Sequence record: PP942979.1
DNA: 64,000 nucleotides
Reading direction: 5' to 3' (one strand)
The translations under genes were made by a program, and so were the position numbers. Below the pieces are notes generated by a model. That model had not been told where the DNA came from. It made no database searches and saw nothing but the letters and a program-made list of their open reading frames with translations. Positions 6,740 through 11,335 of the stretch are shown piece by piece (position 1 is the stretch's first letter; every line of letters starts with the position of its first letter).

Positions 6740-8749
6740 TTATTGATATACGACCTCAACGTTGATACGAAGGTCGATGTACTGCTCGCCGCTTTCTGGC
6801 GTGTACACAGTCACGATGCCAATCCAACCGTTAGCCGCTGTTGGTACCTGCACAAGCTCAGTCTGATATACGGAACCAGTCCAAGTGTACGAAGTCTTAG
6901 CGCTTACGATTGTACGATCACCGATGCTAGTGCCCCACGGCTCATACTCAAGCGTACCCCACAAGTCGCCGTGTTTCGTTTCGTTCGTCTTCTGGAAGTA
7001 ACCACCAGTTGCTGCAACACGAGGCGTAACGTCACGGCCGTAGCCAGAAGTAACGATACGAATACCATCGTCGGTGCAGATACGGAAGTTGAAGTTAACG
7101 GTGTGGTCAACGTTACCGTAGTAGCGCAGAACACCTTTGCTCAACGTCCAACTGCTGGAAACATCATCAACGGACAGACAGCGATATGGAACAAGATAGT
7201 CAACCACGTCAAACTTAGGCGGTTGAATCGGGCAGTATACAAAGTAAGACCAATCACATCCGATAGGCGCTGTCGCTCTGACTGTTATGTTAGAGCGTAA
7301 CGTGTGCTCTGGGTACTTCCAGAACTCAAGAGTACCTGTCTTACCTGCCGCTACATATTCAGTATCAAGCAGGTTCATGTCTTGGTCGAACACCTCAAAC
7401 TTGGTGTCAAAGGAGTTCGCTACGCAGACGACAAGAACAGCGCGTTGATCAGTTTGTGTTCCTAACGCAAAATTATCTTCTGTCGTTGGGTGGCCGGCAG
7501 AGTAGACGCTGTAACTTTCACAAGGGTGCATGTATTCACGCGCACCACGTTCACCAGGACAATACAGGCTGTAGAAGCAACTCGCAAGTGACGCAGCGTT
7601 ACCGAAGTCTTTGCTGACTACGCGCACCATAATGTCACAGGCAACTCCCTGTGGGTCAAAGTAGAAGTACAGATAACCTTCACCCGTCTTCGCGTCAAGC
7701 GTTGTTGCGATACGACGCCCTGCCTGATACACCTCGATGAAGTCAAACGTTTCCCACGAGGTGTAGTCGAGATACATCCAGCCTGCTGTCCAGCCAATGA
7801 AGTGATAGTATTCAAAGGCGTTAGCGTTCTGAATACGTTCAGCGATAGGCCAAACAGTAGCGTGACACGGAGCAGGGAAGATAGGGCTGCCGATGTAGTC
7901 AGGATGAATAACGTCAGGGAAGTTGATAACGTCATATGATGCCTGACTGTCGAGCGCTAACCCACCACGGTCAGACGGTGCTGCAAGACGAGGCGGATAG
8001 ACTTCGAGACTCCAGCCATACCCCTGAGTTGTACGCACACGCACCATGATACGCATATCAGCAGCATCAGGGTCAAACTGAAATTTGATACGAGAGCGTC
8101 CAATCAGTTTACCACACGTTGAAGCAACACGCTCGCCCATGTGATATACATCAACGCTTGCTCCAGCAGGCGCATACGAGGCAATCATCAGCTCAACGTA
8201 GCCTTCAATAGCAGGCATCGCATAGACTGTCTCGGTAATCGTTGCACCACGTCCATGAACAGACGCATACGGCACGTTAGGGTTAGCATAGGTGCCTAGC
8301 CCTGCGCGAGAAGCAACACCAGAAGGGTCGTATGATTCGATGGTCTTGATGCCGGGTCGGTTAATAGATCGACCAGTAGGAGGAGCAAAAGAGTTGACGA
8401 GACCGAAGCCAGTGCGACCAGCATCAGGTAAGTCGAACCCTGCAGGATAGCCTTTGAGTATATCGTATTTCTCACGACCGCCACTCCCTATCCCGTTACC
8501 AGAACCCTTGGTTGTTGATGTAGGACCGCCGCCACACGCGCCCGTGTCAAGATTAGAGCACGGGTCATCGTATGTAGGGTCGAACGAGTCATCAATAAGA
8601 TGCCAACGCTGACCCCATTGGTTACGCACACTAAACTTCTCTGGAGTTAAAGGCGTCCAGTCCCCCTCTCGTGTGCGTATGAACATAGGCGTGTCCACAC
8701 AGTCATGCCAACCGTTATTCGCAGCGTTACGAACGCGAAAACGAGCCAT
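6740..8749 (-). CDS. Tail/fibre protein with three repeated beta-sandwich-like domains
   Basis: 669 aa; three repeats of ...VY..G.R.A(S/T)T...F.FDP....I.VRV...Y(C/P)P. Confidence 0.75.
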   Translation of the reverse strand: MARFRVRNAANNGWHDCVDTPMFIRTREGDWTPLTPEKFSVRNQWGQRWHLIDDSFDPTYDDPCSNLDTGACGGGPTSTTKGSGNGIGSGGREKYDILKGYPAGFDLPDAGRTGFGLVNSFAPPTGRSINRPGIKTIESYDPSGVASRAGLGTYANPNVPYASVHGRGATITETVYAMPAIEGYVELMIASYAPAGASVDVYHMGERVASTCGKLIGRSRIKFQFDPDAADMRIMVRVRTTQGYGWSLEVYPPRLAAPSDRGGLALDSQASYDVINFPDVIHPDYIGSPIFPAPCHATVWPIAERIQNANAFEYYHFIGWTAGWMYLDYTSWETFDFIEVYQAGRRIATTLDAKTGEGYLYFYFDPQGVACDIMVRVVSKDFGNAASLASCFYSLYCPGERGAREYMHPCESYSVYSAGHPTTEDNFALGTQTDQRAVLVVCVANSFDTKFEVFDQDMNLLDTEYVAAGKTGTLEFWKYPEHTLRSNITVRATAPIGCDWSYFVYCPIQPPKFDVVDYLVPYRCLSVDDVSSSWTLSKGVLRYYGNVDHTVNFNFRICTDDGIRIVTSGYGRDVTPRVAATGGYFQKTNETKHGDLWGTLEYEPWGTSIGDRTIVSAKTSYTWTGSVYQTELVQVPTAANGWIGIVTVYTPESGEQYIDLRINVEVVYQ

Positions 8750-8758
8750 GATTTCTCC

Positions 8759-9250
8759 TTATGGACGTACCCAGATGGCGCCGGGTTCGATCTCTTGATC
8801 CATTGACGGGTCAGTGTCTTGAATGAAGATTTGCAGTACACCAGGATTACCAGGAGCACCAGTAGGACCCGTCGGGCCTGTAGGACCAGCAGGGCCTCTG
8901 TTACCTACCCAGCCTTGCTTGCCTTGCAGACCATCATTACCACGAGGGCCGGGACAGCCGTCAGTACCACGACGACCATCGTTACCCATGAGACCGTCAA
9001 TACCGTCACGACCAGATGGACCTACGCCACCAGCAGGACCGTAACCGATACTATGAATCGTAGGCAGCCCAGAAATTTGCAGCTTGCCAATATTGGGGAT
9101 GTTGATTGCTAACAGACCGGTAAGCTGATCAAAAGAACCGGTAAGCTGGCTGTCGTCTTCTGACGTATCAACGTTAATCCCACCTTGAGTCGCAACAACA
9201 GGGCCAGATGCGTTGGCCTTGATAAGCGATATATCAACCTTCTCTACCAT
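8759..9250 (-). CDS. Collagen-like fibre protein
   Basis: Gly-X-Y tract with GCPG; GLPT motif; C-terminal GAIWVRP. Confidence 0.85.
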   Translation of the reverse strand: MVEKVDISLIKANASGPVVATQGGINVDTSEDDSQLTGSFDQLTGLLAINIPNIGKLQISGLPTIHSIGYGPAGGVGPSGRDGIDGLMGNDGRRGTDGCPGPRGNDGLQGKQGWVGNRGPAGPTGPTGPTGAPGNPGVLQIFIQDTDPSMDQEIEPGAIWVRP

Positions 9251-9260
9251 AACAACTCCC

Positions 9261-9893
9261 TTATGGCCAAGTTATATTCTGATCTTTGGTCGGGTCTACC
9301 CAGATGGTGCCAGCAGCAACGTTCCCTGGGTTCGTAGCACTTACGATGATAGACAGACGACCGGCAGGACCCGCAGGGCCAGTTGGTCCGGTAGGGCCTG
9401 TAGCACCTGTTGCGCCAGTAGGACCCGTACCGCCACGAGGGCCAGTAGGGCCTGTAGGACCCATTGGGCCTGTGCGACCGTCTGGGCCAGTAGGACCGAC
9501 AGGCCCGGGTAGACCATCACGACCATCTGGGCCGGGAAGACCCTGCTCACCATCAGGTCCGATATTACCGTCACAACCCTGCTCACCTGGACTGCCGTCT
9601 CGCCCATCACGACCATCTTTACCATCAGCACCCGTTTCACCTCTGCCTCCCTGTCGTCCTTCAGGTATATCCGCAGCGGTTGGGAACCCACCTACTTTAA
9701 TCGACTGCCCGTTAGCGAACTTGAGAGTAAGAATACCAGAAGTCGCATCAAACGAGGAGTCAGCAGTTACCTCTGAGGGCACATCGGCATCGTTTGGGTC
9801 TATCGAAAGAACTCCAGACTGAGCGCGAATTGCAGCAGGCGTAGACGAAGAACCAGCCTGAATGAGACCGGTCTTAACTTTAATCAGACTCAT
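9261..9893 (-). CDS. Collagen-like fibre protein
   Basis: About 35 Gly-X-Y triplets; GFPT motif; C-terminal GTIWVDP. Confidence 0.85.
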
Positions 9894-11335
9894 TACTTTT
9901 TCTCCGCTTTCGCAACAATATCCGTGTTGTGTGCGAGTACATCACCAACGAAGTAGCAGTCAAATGGATCGACGTCAATATCAACAGTCTGCACCAAATC
10001 GTCTACACGTCGGAACTCATAAACAGACACTGGTCCTTTACGACCTAGCACTGTATGTCCTGGCTCTACTTCTCGCGCAGGAACGTAACGCCACACGGAT
10101 TGATCATATATCAACACTGGATGCTCGTGTGTGAACTTCTGTCCGTTGATAATGAAGTAGTGGTCTTCCTGTCCGTACTTGAGAGCAGTCACAGTAGCGT
10201 TTACCAGATTGCCTTTCAAGCTCTTAGAAGACCAATCACGGAACTCTTTCGGCTGATTAGAGAAGCTACGCAGGCTATCACCTACACGCAAGTTCTCAAC
10301 AGCCTTCGGTCCAGTAATCGTTTCCACCTCAGAACCAAACACGATACAGCCAGATGTTGAAGTATTGACAGGGTTACGCGCCACGACTGTCAGAGCAGAA
10401 CTCACAGTAACAGTCGGACGTGACGTTTGACCCATATCAGTTACTACGCAGCGGATAGTGCCTTTGATTGTACGATCAGCACCAAGTCCGAGACGCAGAT
10501 AGAAGTTAACAATACACGTTGAGGTAGTAGTCGCATCGAGCGTTACGCCCTCAGTAGTTGTGATGGACCACTGATACTTATATGGGCCCACACCACCACG
10601 CGCATTGACAGGAAGATATGCGAGCGAGGTAAACACATCAGAGCCTTGCACGGCACGTTGACCTACCATGTACAAGCTCGACACTGACGCAGCAAGAGGT
10701 GTTATCGTAGGCAGAGGCGGAGCAGGCGTCACGTTGGCAGTAGGGTACAACCACACGAATACTCGACCATCTGTAGGCTGTGCAGACGATAGAACAGCAG
10801 TAGTGATTGGCGCTGGTCCAGTGGGACCTGTAGCTCCAGATATACAGCTTGCTCCAGTAGCACCACGAGGACCGAGAACGCCGGGAGGACCATCAGGACC
10901 GTCGGGACCAGTAGGGCCTGTAGGACCCTCTCGTCCAGTATCACCCGTCTGACCATCAGGGCCATCACGTCCCGGTTCACCTACAGGGCCTGTCTTGCCT
11001 CTATTGCCTACAGGGCCAGGACAACCCGGTCTGCCTGTCTCTCCATCACGACCATCACGCCCGTCTCGGCCAGGAGCACCGGGAGCGCCTCGACGTCCCG
11101 GTTTCCCTTCACCAAACATAGCTACAGTCGGAAGGCCGGGAACGTTTACTACATTCCCGTTCTTCTTGATGAATACTAACACACCTGTCTTGCTGTTAAA
11201 CCTTACGCTGGCAATCTGAGTATCTGTCGCTAAGTCACTCGACTCAAACCCGACACTACCATCAACACCAACCAGCGATTTACCTTCATCGTTAGCAGTT
11301 GTTTCGATTTGCGAAAGTTTTAACTGTGTTGTCAT
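9893..11335 (-). CDS. Collagen-like fibre protein with C-terminal Hint (intein-like) domain
   Basis: Gly-X-Y tract, then a beta domain, then a Hint domain with block A CIVFGSEV, block B THEH and block F/G DIDV...[11 protein letters not shown]. Confidence 0.85.
9926..10348 (-). other. Hint / mini-intein domain (141 aa, Cys1 to His-Asn, +1 Thr)
   Basis: Cys codon at 10346-10348; His-Asn at 9926-9931; next residue Thr; no homing endonuclease insert. Confidence 0.8.

Follow-up and report, generated by a model that had tools for sequence, protein, structure and literature searches.

The 64-kb window analysed here, by which we mean the whole stretch of DNA under study, belongs to the genome of Erwinia phage phB78 (PP942979.1; record coordinate = window coordinate + 62000), a 262-kb jumbo myovirus of the genus Alexandravirus. 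On its minus strand, like all features given below, lies SHZ78_104 (9893..11335), a gene 100% identical to the record that encodes a collagen-like virion or fibre protein of 480 residues. The record annotates the product as a 'virion structural protein' and it matches phrog_38766 with an E-value of 2e-250; the reading frame is whole, without breaks, and the region holds no broken genes. Towards its end the protein carries a Hint domain of the BIL/PT-HINT type that runs from Cys330 to Asn470 (141 residues; 9926..10348) and is followed by a tail of 10 residues, Thr471 to Lys480 (9896..9925), as delimited by the open reading frame (ORF) and the orthologue alignment. Ahead of the Hint domain the protein begins with an N-terminal domain (residues 1-75; 11111..11335), which by alignment is common to both downstream paralogues, is presumed to be the attachment end, and is modelled by AlphaFold with beta strands at residues 41-65 at a moderate predicted local distance difference test score (pLDDT). 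A collagen Gly-X-Y region follows (residues 76-175; 10811..11110; Pfam Collagen, E 1.4e-14), which in the orthologue representatives P0001-P0004 consists of uninterrupted runs of 28-29 triplets, and then a post-collagen segment with an Ig-like beta-sandwich (residues 176-322; 10370..10810), recognized by AlphaFold and profile search. The sandwich itself, at about residues 215-321, is modelled confidently (pLDDT 80-94), and in a profile search weakly resembles the phage decoration proteins 5lxk_A and 8zvi_a (E ~2e-4). A disordered linker (residues 323-329; 10349..10369), delimited by AlphaFold and the orthologue alignment, joins it to the Hint domain; its pLDDT falls below 50 at residues 324-327, its sequence varies among orthologues, mostly with Gly at the -1 position, and its last residue, Gly329, is the -1 residue of the predicted scissile bond. 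A first-pass annotation, made by reading the sequence alone, had placed the Hint domain at the tip of a collagen fibre. Its C-terminal position is borne out, but it does not sit directly on the collagen helix, as about 150 residues, including the Ig-like sandwich and the 7-residue linker, lie in between.

Residues 330-470 are a true Hint domain, with a match well beyond chance, as Pfam, phmmer, profile searches, AlphaFold and Foldseek all indicate. The best Pfam model is PT-HINT (PF07591), at an E-value of 8e-6; the full-length protein scores 24.9 bits and the isolated domain 26.6 bits against a gathering threshold of 27.7, about 1 bit below the cut-off; precomputed Pfam assignments give PF07591 to several close orthologues, and Hint_2 matches the domain at E 3.5e-5. 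Against PDB sequences, phmmer matched 2lwy, a BIL domain of Clostridium thermocellum, end to end through the final His-Asn (E 5e-6). A profile built from 62 relatives brought this match to E 1.4e-16, with BIL2 of Tetrahymena BUBL second (6y75/6tmm; E 6.6e-11 with this profile, and 7.9e-8) and all inteins ranking below both. The AlphaFold model of residues 330-470 has a pLDDT of about 90, and its top Foldseek match is again 2lwy (E 1.6e-8, template modelling (TM) score 0.80), followed by BIL2 and then by mini-inteins and Hedgehog; among the 54 PDB matches at E <1e-3, ranks 1-29 are all BILs, inteins or Hedgehog, and later ones are mostly so.

The active-site residues of the Hint fold are those that the first-pass annotation had listed, within the coordinates it had given, and the end of the 480-residue ORF is as it had quoted. 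They comprise Cys330 in block A (Cys1; codon 10346..10348), Thr402 (10130..10132) and His405 (10121..10123) in block B, Asp459 in block F (9959..9961) and His469-Asn470 in block G (9926..9931), followed by Thr471 at +1 at the head of the 10-residue tail. An alignment of 62 relatives, the most distant at about 16% identity, shows no change at Cys330, Thr402, His469 or Asn470 and at least 90% conservation of His405 and Asp459; a second set of 65 agrees. Every residue that an N-S acyl shift at Gly329|Cys330 or the cyclisation of Asn470 would require is conserved, and the domain is catalytically intact by its residue set. No endonuclease family was matched in the 480-residue protein by Pfam, and the 141-residue domain is too small to hold one, in line with the annotation's statement that an endonuclease is missing; Pfam likewise gave no match to Peptidase_S74 in this protein. 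Within the 64-kb window Cys330..Asn470 is the only Hint domain found.

The gene, together with the same two paralogues, was found in 48 Erwinia phage records, in Dickeya phage AD1, Yersinia phage fHe-Yen9-02, Alcaligenes Afa-NA1, Salmonella Sen-NF and phage NCTB, and in several metagenomic jumbo-phage contigs. Across at least six phage lineages, and 56 phage records with an orthologue, the Hint domain stands at the same site in all orthologues, one derived loss apart. All Hint-bearing orthologues keep Cys1 and His-Asn without change and retain the block B Thr-x-x-His motif, in which His is replaced by Gln once. The domain is under purifying selection: the ratio of nonsynonymous to synonymous substitution rates (dN/dS) is 0.08-0.13 where dS is unsaturated, a range like that of the other domains of the gene. 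In the tail dS is 0-0.47, against 1-2.7 in the Hint domain, and this low value is expected because the ribosome-binding site of the next gene is embedded in the tail codons. The residues D472, E478 and K479 of the tail are at least 90% conserved among orthologues, and Asp at +2 and Lys at +9 are retained in nearly all of the orthologue group despite tail lengths of 9-18 residues.

The residue at +1, by contrast, is not fixed. It is Thr in all 21 close clusters of the Erwinia clade, Ser in P0001, Ala in P0002 and P0003, Met in Afa-NA1 and one metagenome relative, and Val in Yersinia phage fHe-Yen9-02, to which the Ala-bearing metagenome relative P0002 is near-identical; in the wider family described below Cys, Ser or Thr occupies +1 in only 12 of 114 members. 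This variation among orthologues indicates that a nucleophile at +1 is not a conserved requirement, and the description of the domain as splicing-competent is not supported as worded, the +1 Thr being confined to the Erwinia clade. Rarity of the +1 nucleophile is instead a hallmark of BIL domains, which give chiefly N- and C-cleavage products (PMC7664689; PMC7765530).

Several observations on individual orthologues accompany this picture. The record of phage Y3 already notes that the protein 'contains intein domain'. Afa-NA1 (PV550095.1, 78 kb) and Sen-NF (PV359490.1, 108 kb) match the Hint and the Ig-like domain with identical identity and E-value under different stated hosts, and look like one partial jumbo-phage-like sequence deposited twice. 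In two distant orthologues of 706-725 residues (P0006, L010:8001-10121, and L026:1366-3540) extra sequence, a Calx-beta insert in P0006, lies between the Ig-like domain and the polyGly-Hint; new domains have apparently been added upstream while the Hint cassette stayed terminal. Three IMG/VR jumbo contigs (L028, L037 and L040) carry the same N-terminal domain and collagen scaffold with a different C-terminal domain of about 250 residues, in which neither a Pfam match nor a Hint was found, which shows the distal end of this fibre family to be modular.

The single loss of the domain is informative about the nature of the tail. In the Dickeya JA phages (Salmondvirus; JA11_096) and in metagenome contig L025 the orthologue has 324-332 residues and ends ...ARNPK, 7 residues before the position of Cys330, with linker, Hint and tail all absent. 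A neighbour-joining tree, a simple distance tree of the non-collagen N-terminal parts of the orthologues, nests this pair among Hint-bearing orthologues, and the clade that unites it with phB78 leaves out five distant Hint-bearing relatives in 100/100 bootstraps. This nesting implies that the cassette is ancestral and was lost once, as a unit. As the Hint-less orthologues also lack the tail, the tail belongs to the Hint rather than to the fibre, the opposite of what holds for an intein between two exteins. Their ending further indicates that the fibre works when it stops where N-cleavage would end it.

These alleles bear directly on the idea that the domain is a selfish mini-intein, now devoid of its endonuclease, whose presence close to the gene's end is simply tolerated. 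Class-1 mini-inteins such as gp41-1 (6qaz) share with the phB78 protein both the fold and the full residue set, including the possible +1 nucleophile, Thr471, and canonical mini-inteins do occur among the lower-ranking Foldseek matches. Unlike a class-1 intein, however, the phB78 Hint is not inserted at a conserved site of its host protein, and the Hint-less alleles lack the supposed C-extein; its distribution is not sporadic, with one derived loss only; dN/dS is about 0.1; the +1 nucleophile is unconserved and the nearest relatives are BILs; and elsewhere the cassette follows unrelated N-terminal domains and in every case forms the very C-terminal end. We therefore reject this explanation, which the tail-less Hint-less alleles, vertical inheritance and purifying selection largely refute and to which we attach a very small probability. 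The first-pass annotation had itself favoured a domesticated autoprocessing-type Hint over a selfish element, and the shared site in at least six lineages, the purifying selection and a tail that travels with the Hint all agree with it.

Linker, Hint and lysine-bearing tail together form a fixed, vertically inherited C-terminal cassette of the fibre protein, and the known domains that it resembles most are the A-type BILs. These keep His-Asn and occupy variable regions of surface or secreted proteins that are not themselves conserved (PMC7765530), and the phB78 Hint likewise sits in a variable, surface-exposed, non-conserved protein. The A-type BIL 2lwy is its best match in both sequence and structure and has the same Cys1, Thr..His, Asp and His-Asn, without a conserved +1 nucleophile and without an endonuclease. 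The phB78 cassette differs from A-type BILs in that it is phage-encoded, lies in a virion fibre gene at the extreme C-terminus with 1-25 residues after His-Asn, almost always carries Lys in its tail and, in the phB78 clade, has Thr at +1. In residue set, type of host protein and closest relatives the phB78 Hint thus agrees with the A-type definition, while autocleavage itself is predicted. As the domain has the features described for BILs (PMC7664689; PMC7765530), we read it as a domesticated BIL-type autoprocessing cassette that would remove itself from the fibre at Gly329, a reading to which we give about an even chance of being right.

In such a process Cys330 would convert the Gly329-Cys330 peptide bond into a thioester post-translationally, the thioester would be resolved mainly by hydrolysis and possibly by an amine, and cyclisation of Asn470 would free the tail. 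The Hint would be discarded and the virion fibre would thus end at Gly329, just past the Ig-like tip, so that the Ig-like sandwich would become the distal domain of the mature fibre. Before its removal the Hint may act as a transient C-terminal module, either as a folding or assembly aid or as a timing device, in the manner of the Peptidase S74 chaperones. By calculation the precursor weighs 50.35 kDa, residues 1-329 weigh 33.27 kDa, the Hint 16.02 kDa and residues 1-329 with the tail joined 34.35 kDa. Hedgehog offers a parallel for the first step, since its Hint domain cuts at Gly|Cys by way of a thioester, from which a nucleophile takes up the N-terminal product (PMC7664689). The Hog domain (1at0) has the same fold (Foldseek, TM 0.73) and is likewise C-terminal; it has no terminal His-Asn and bears a sterol-recognition region after the Hint, whereas the phB78 domain has an invariant His-Asn and then 10 residues.

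The cassette is not confined to this fibre. When 1.84 billion representative proteins were searched with the 155 C-terminal residues, 328 relatives came up at an E-value of 1e-3 or below, and in 111 of the 144 in which His-Asn could be located the sequence ends within 25 residues past it. Cys1 is near-universal among them and usually follows a glycine run (polyGly). The parts ahead of the cassette resemble adhesins or fibres and include collagen, Ig, fn3, PKD, Calx-beta, BACON, PASTA and a tail-collar fibre N-terminus. All eight contigs that were looked at are phage-like, and four of them have tail or lysis genes beside the Hint protein, but no neighbour is constant throughout. BFVD includes numerous 'uncultured Caudovirales' proteins built in this way. 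Different front domains combined with a constant terminal position identify linker, Hint and tail as a mobile C-terminal cassette of phage surface proteins.

PT-HINT, the best Pfam model for the phB78 domain, also recognizes 37 of 65 family members, at best with E 3e-23, and likewise denotes an autoproteolytic Hint near a C-terminus, and this raises the question of whether the cassette might be the remnant of a polymorphic-toxin release module whose toxin domain was lost. No toxin domain was found after the Hint, however, in the phB78 protein, in any orthologue or in the 13 relatives with long post-Hint extensions, which consist of more Hints, PKD, fn3, DUF7289, Peptidase_S74 (one case) or nothing recognizable. 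The carrier is a phage structural protein rather than a secreted bacterial toxin, its genomic context is a virion fibre module, and the short tail is a conserved feature and not a decaying stump. A toxin-release architecture is accordingly rejected, and an origin as its remnant appears highly improbable to us.

The one relative with Peptidase_S74, P0099 (L097:6001-7329), consists of a collagen-Hint unit followed directly by the peptidase, and the presence of both places the Hint in the same niche as a known self-cleaving chaperone. S74 peptidases use a Ser-Lys dyad. Their fold and chemistry are unrelated to those of the phB78 Hint, which would work by a Cys thioester and Asn cyclisation, and the resemblance is functional only, residing in the C-terminal position and in the proposed logic of a module that is needed transiently and then removes itself. 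S74 modules serve as intramolecular chaperones on phage tail spikes and fibres (Schulz et al. 2010, cited in PMC12143355). Beside P0099 lie genes for a 2OG-Fe(II) oxygenase, a GT25-type glycosyltransferase and a sulfotransferase, a neighbourhood that looks like a viral collagen-modification cluster, and 2OG-Fe(II) oxygenase genes also lie downstream of the Hint-ending protein on contig L015. Tandem Hints joined by His-Asn-Lys-Gly(n)-Cys linkers occur on phage-like contigs in P0030 (L016:6001-7806), P0016, P0041 and P0090; the neighbours of P0030 on L016 are RNA ligase, polynucleotide kinase and queuosine-pathway genes.

The tail of the cassette follows a rule of its own. Tail statistics were taken from 110 short-tailed representatives at 50% identity, with the ends of 144 further ORFs of these phage loci as control; the representatives are mutually related, and p-values therefore overstate their independence. 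At least one Lys is found in 96% of these tails, and where the tail is a single residue it is Lys in seven of eight cases. Lys is last or penultimate in 57% of tails against 10% of control ORF ends (Fisher p 5e-16), and its frequency is 13% in tails against 3.8% in protein bodies. An artefact of gene ends or ribosome-binding sites is rejected for the family by the comparison with the control ends, although in phB78 itself the next gene does have its GGAG ribosome-binding site within the final codons of the tail (9902..9905), just ahead of a TAATG stop/start overlap with that gene (9891..9895).

The nearest precedent for a lysine-bearing tail is the isopeptide chemistry of BIL2 from the BUBL locus of Tetrahymena thermophila. 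This domain, also a BIL without a +1 nucleophile and the second-closest solved relative of the phB78 Hint, passes the C-terminus of its N-extein to the epsilon-amine of lysine, and the N-extein has been conjugated to several substrates (PMC8616854). By analogy, the polyGly-Cys-Hint-HisAsn-Lys-tail arrangement may be a self-contained, ATP-independent ligase module that joins the C-terminal glycine of the fibre to a lysine amine, which could conceivably lie in the tail itself, in an adjacent protein of the virion or in a host-surface molecule; we regard this as a minor possibility. More generally, an amine or hydroxyl might take the place of water in resolving the Gly329 thioester, in one of three forms. 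The first is a BIL2-like isopeptide onto the protein's own tail lysine, after which cyclisation of Asn470 would leave the fibre capped by a branched decapeptide; the second is transfer to a nucleophile, such as a lysine, on a different virion protein or on the host surface; and the third, confined to the Erwinia clade, is ordinary class-1 splicing through Thr471 to the 34.35-kDa product.

Taken over all its forms, ligation is in our estimate unlikely, with something like one chance in five, though a number of features speak for it. These are the prevalence and near-terminal enrichment of tail lysine relative to controls, the retention of Lys at +9 over variable tail lengths, the invariant His-Asn, the kinship with BIL2, the Gly or polyGly ahead of Cys1 and, for splicing, the Thr471 of all 21 close orthologue clusters. 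Against these stand the replacement of the +1 Thr by Ala, Val or Met in other orthologues and the absence of any tail-like sequence from the Hint-less ones. The position of Lys follows the C-terminus and not the active site, and the tail is disordered in the AlphaFold model, residues 473-480 in particular. BIL2, by contrast, is flanked on either side by a ubiquitin-like domain in a eukaryotic polyprotein and has its acceptor Lys in a folded C-extein, where the phB78 protein has a disordered peptide of about 10 residues. Since the next gene has its ribosome-binding site in the E478-K480 codons and dS in the tail is low, part of the local conservation is at the DNA level. Adding a peptide of 1-10 residues to a fibre has, moreover, no evident benefit.

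Self-removal would also not apply if the Hint were retained on the virion as a distal knob of the fibre, whether as a structural or binding domain or as a latent, spring-loaded thioester that would react only when it touches the host surface. Receptor-binding domains typically sit at the far end of a fibre, and ligand activation has a precedent in BIL2, which is switched by Zn (PMC8616854). Stand-alone Hint-like ORFs of about 152 residues lie directly after the orthologous fibre gene in phage NCTB (BN7874_135; L099:3729-4190) and on a TARA contig (L014:7534-7992). Both lack Cys1 and the block B His, yet end in His-Asn-Lys plus two residues, and their conservation across two distant contigs suggests that catalysis is dispensable for some Hint folds; from their sequence they look like a non-catalytic Hint protein of the fibre module, of which no counterpart was found within the 64-kb window. 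A purely structural role, however, would leave unexplained the strict conservation of Cys1, Thr/His, Asp and His-Asn in very divergent members. Receptor-binding tips usually vary more than the rest of their protein, whereas across the Erwinia, Dickeya and Yersinia phages the Hint does not, and one lineage does without it altogether. Retention seems to us improbable, slightly more so than ligation.

The reading of the cassette as a self-removing module has points against it as well. Virion proteomics for this phage group, which would show the predicted cleavage directly, was not found in the literature searched. N-cleavage alone requires neither His-Asn nor a lysine tail, as the Hedgehog Hint, which has neither, illustrates, and their presence hints at chemistry beyond simple hydrolysis. 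The Cys1-less ORFs of NCTB and the TARA contig indicate that Hint folds of these phages can be non-catalytic, and a chaperone role cannot be obligatory, since the JA11 lineage assembles its fibre without a Hint. The first-pass annotation had proposed three functions, namely a self-removing chaperone, the splicing on of the decapeptide and covalent attachment of a nucleophile; we would rank self-removal first, with ligation still a candidate in view of the lysine tail and the BIL2 precedent.

The surroundings of SHZ78_104 are those of a baseplate and fibre module, with a PAAR protein, baseplate wedge proteins, a 1440-residue tail protein and a 779-residue protein, then SHZ78_104 itself, two shorter collagen-like paralogues, a 669-residue protein and more fibre genes. 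The paralogues, delimited by ORF, Pfam and alignment, comprise 210 residues (9261..9893) and 163 residues (8759..9250), and both are without a Hint. The three tandem proteins have in common the N-terminal domain of about 75 residues, a conserved Cys in a Gly-Cys-x-Gly triplet and a short post-collagen motif; the collagen run is equally long in the 480- and 210-residue proteins and 11 triplets shorter in the 163-residue one. A heterotrimer of the three was also considered as a hypothetical assembly. The trio is conserved among jumbo phages of Erwinia, Dickeya and Yersinia and as far afield as contigs from ocean metagenomes. The proteins behind the 'hairs' of hairy myoviruses are unknown (PMC6143709), and we put the trio forward as candidates for them.

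The 669-residue neighbour (6740..8749), also without a Hint, aligns at 35% identity across 466 residues with the N-terminal region of a 1304-residue 'large intein domain protein' of phage NCTB (L099:5554-9468), which does end in a polyGly-Cys-Hint-HisAsn-tail cassette. The same label on the Hint-less homologues of Yoloswag (gp98) and Afa-NA1 traces to copying from NCTB, whose longer homologue truly ends in a Hint; Pfam gives no support for it in these two or in the phB78 protein. The annotations 'contains intein domain' and 'large intein domain protein' in these genomes are misleading and in part wrong.

The Hint superfamily, BIL domains, PT-HINT and the 'intein domain' notes on the Y3 and NCTB records were known already. 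Full-text searches and surveys of fibre domains turned up no paper on Hint or BIL domains on phage fibres, and four features appear to be undescribed so far: the toxin-less terminal arrangement, the fact that it has become fixed in a fibre gene of phages, its wide spread in metagenomes and the lysine rule of the tail. To our knowledge, the natural role of BIL domains has been an open question ever since their description, and the BILs characterised so far come from a handful of bacterial proteins and from a single polyubiquitin locus of a ciliate. A BIL-type cassette in cultured, easily grown phages, on a virion protein that can be read by mass spectrometry, makes this role testable. The cassette is common on metagenomic phage fibre and decoration-like proteins, hundreds of which end in polyGly-Cys-Hint-HN and a short tail that almost always bears a lysine, and its occurrence in several hundred sequence clusters at 50% identity merits a family definition of its own. 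Should the Hint indeed remove itself, it would be a second disposable C-terminal maturation module of phage fibres, chemically unrelated to the S74 chaperones. Should it ligate instead, it would represent a new post-translational modification of virions and a compact lysine-directed ligation tool, and some fibres and decoration proteins would be matured through isopeptide formation rather than by simple cleavage.

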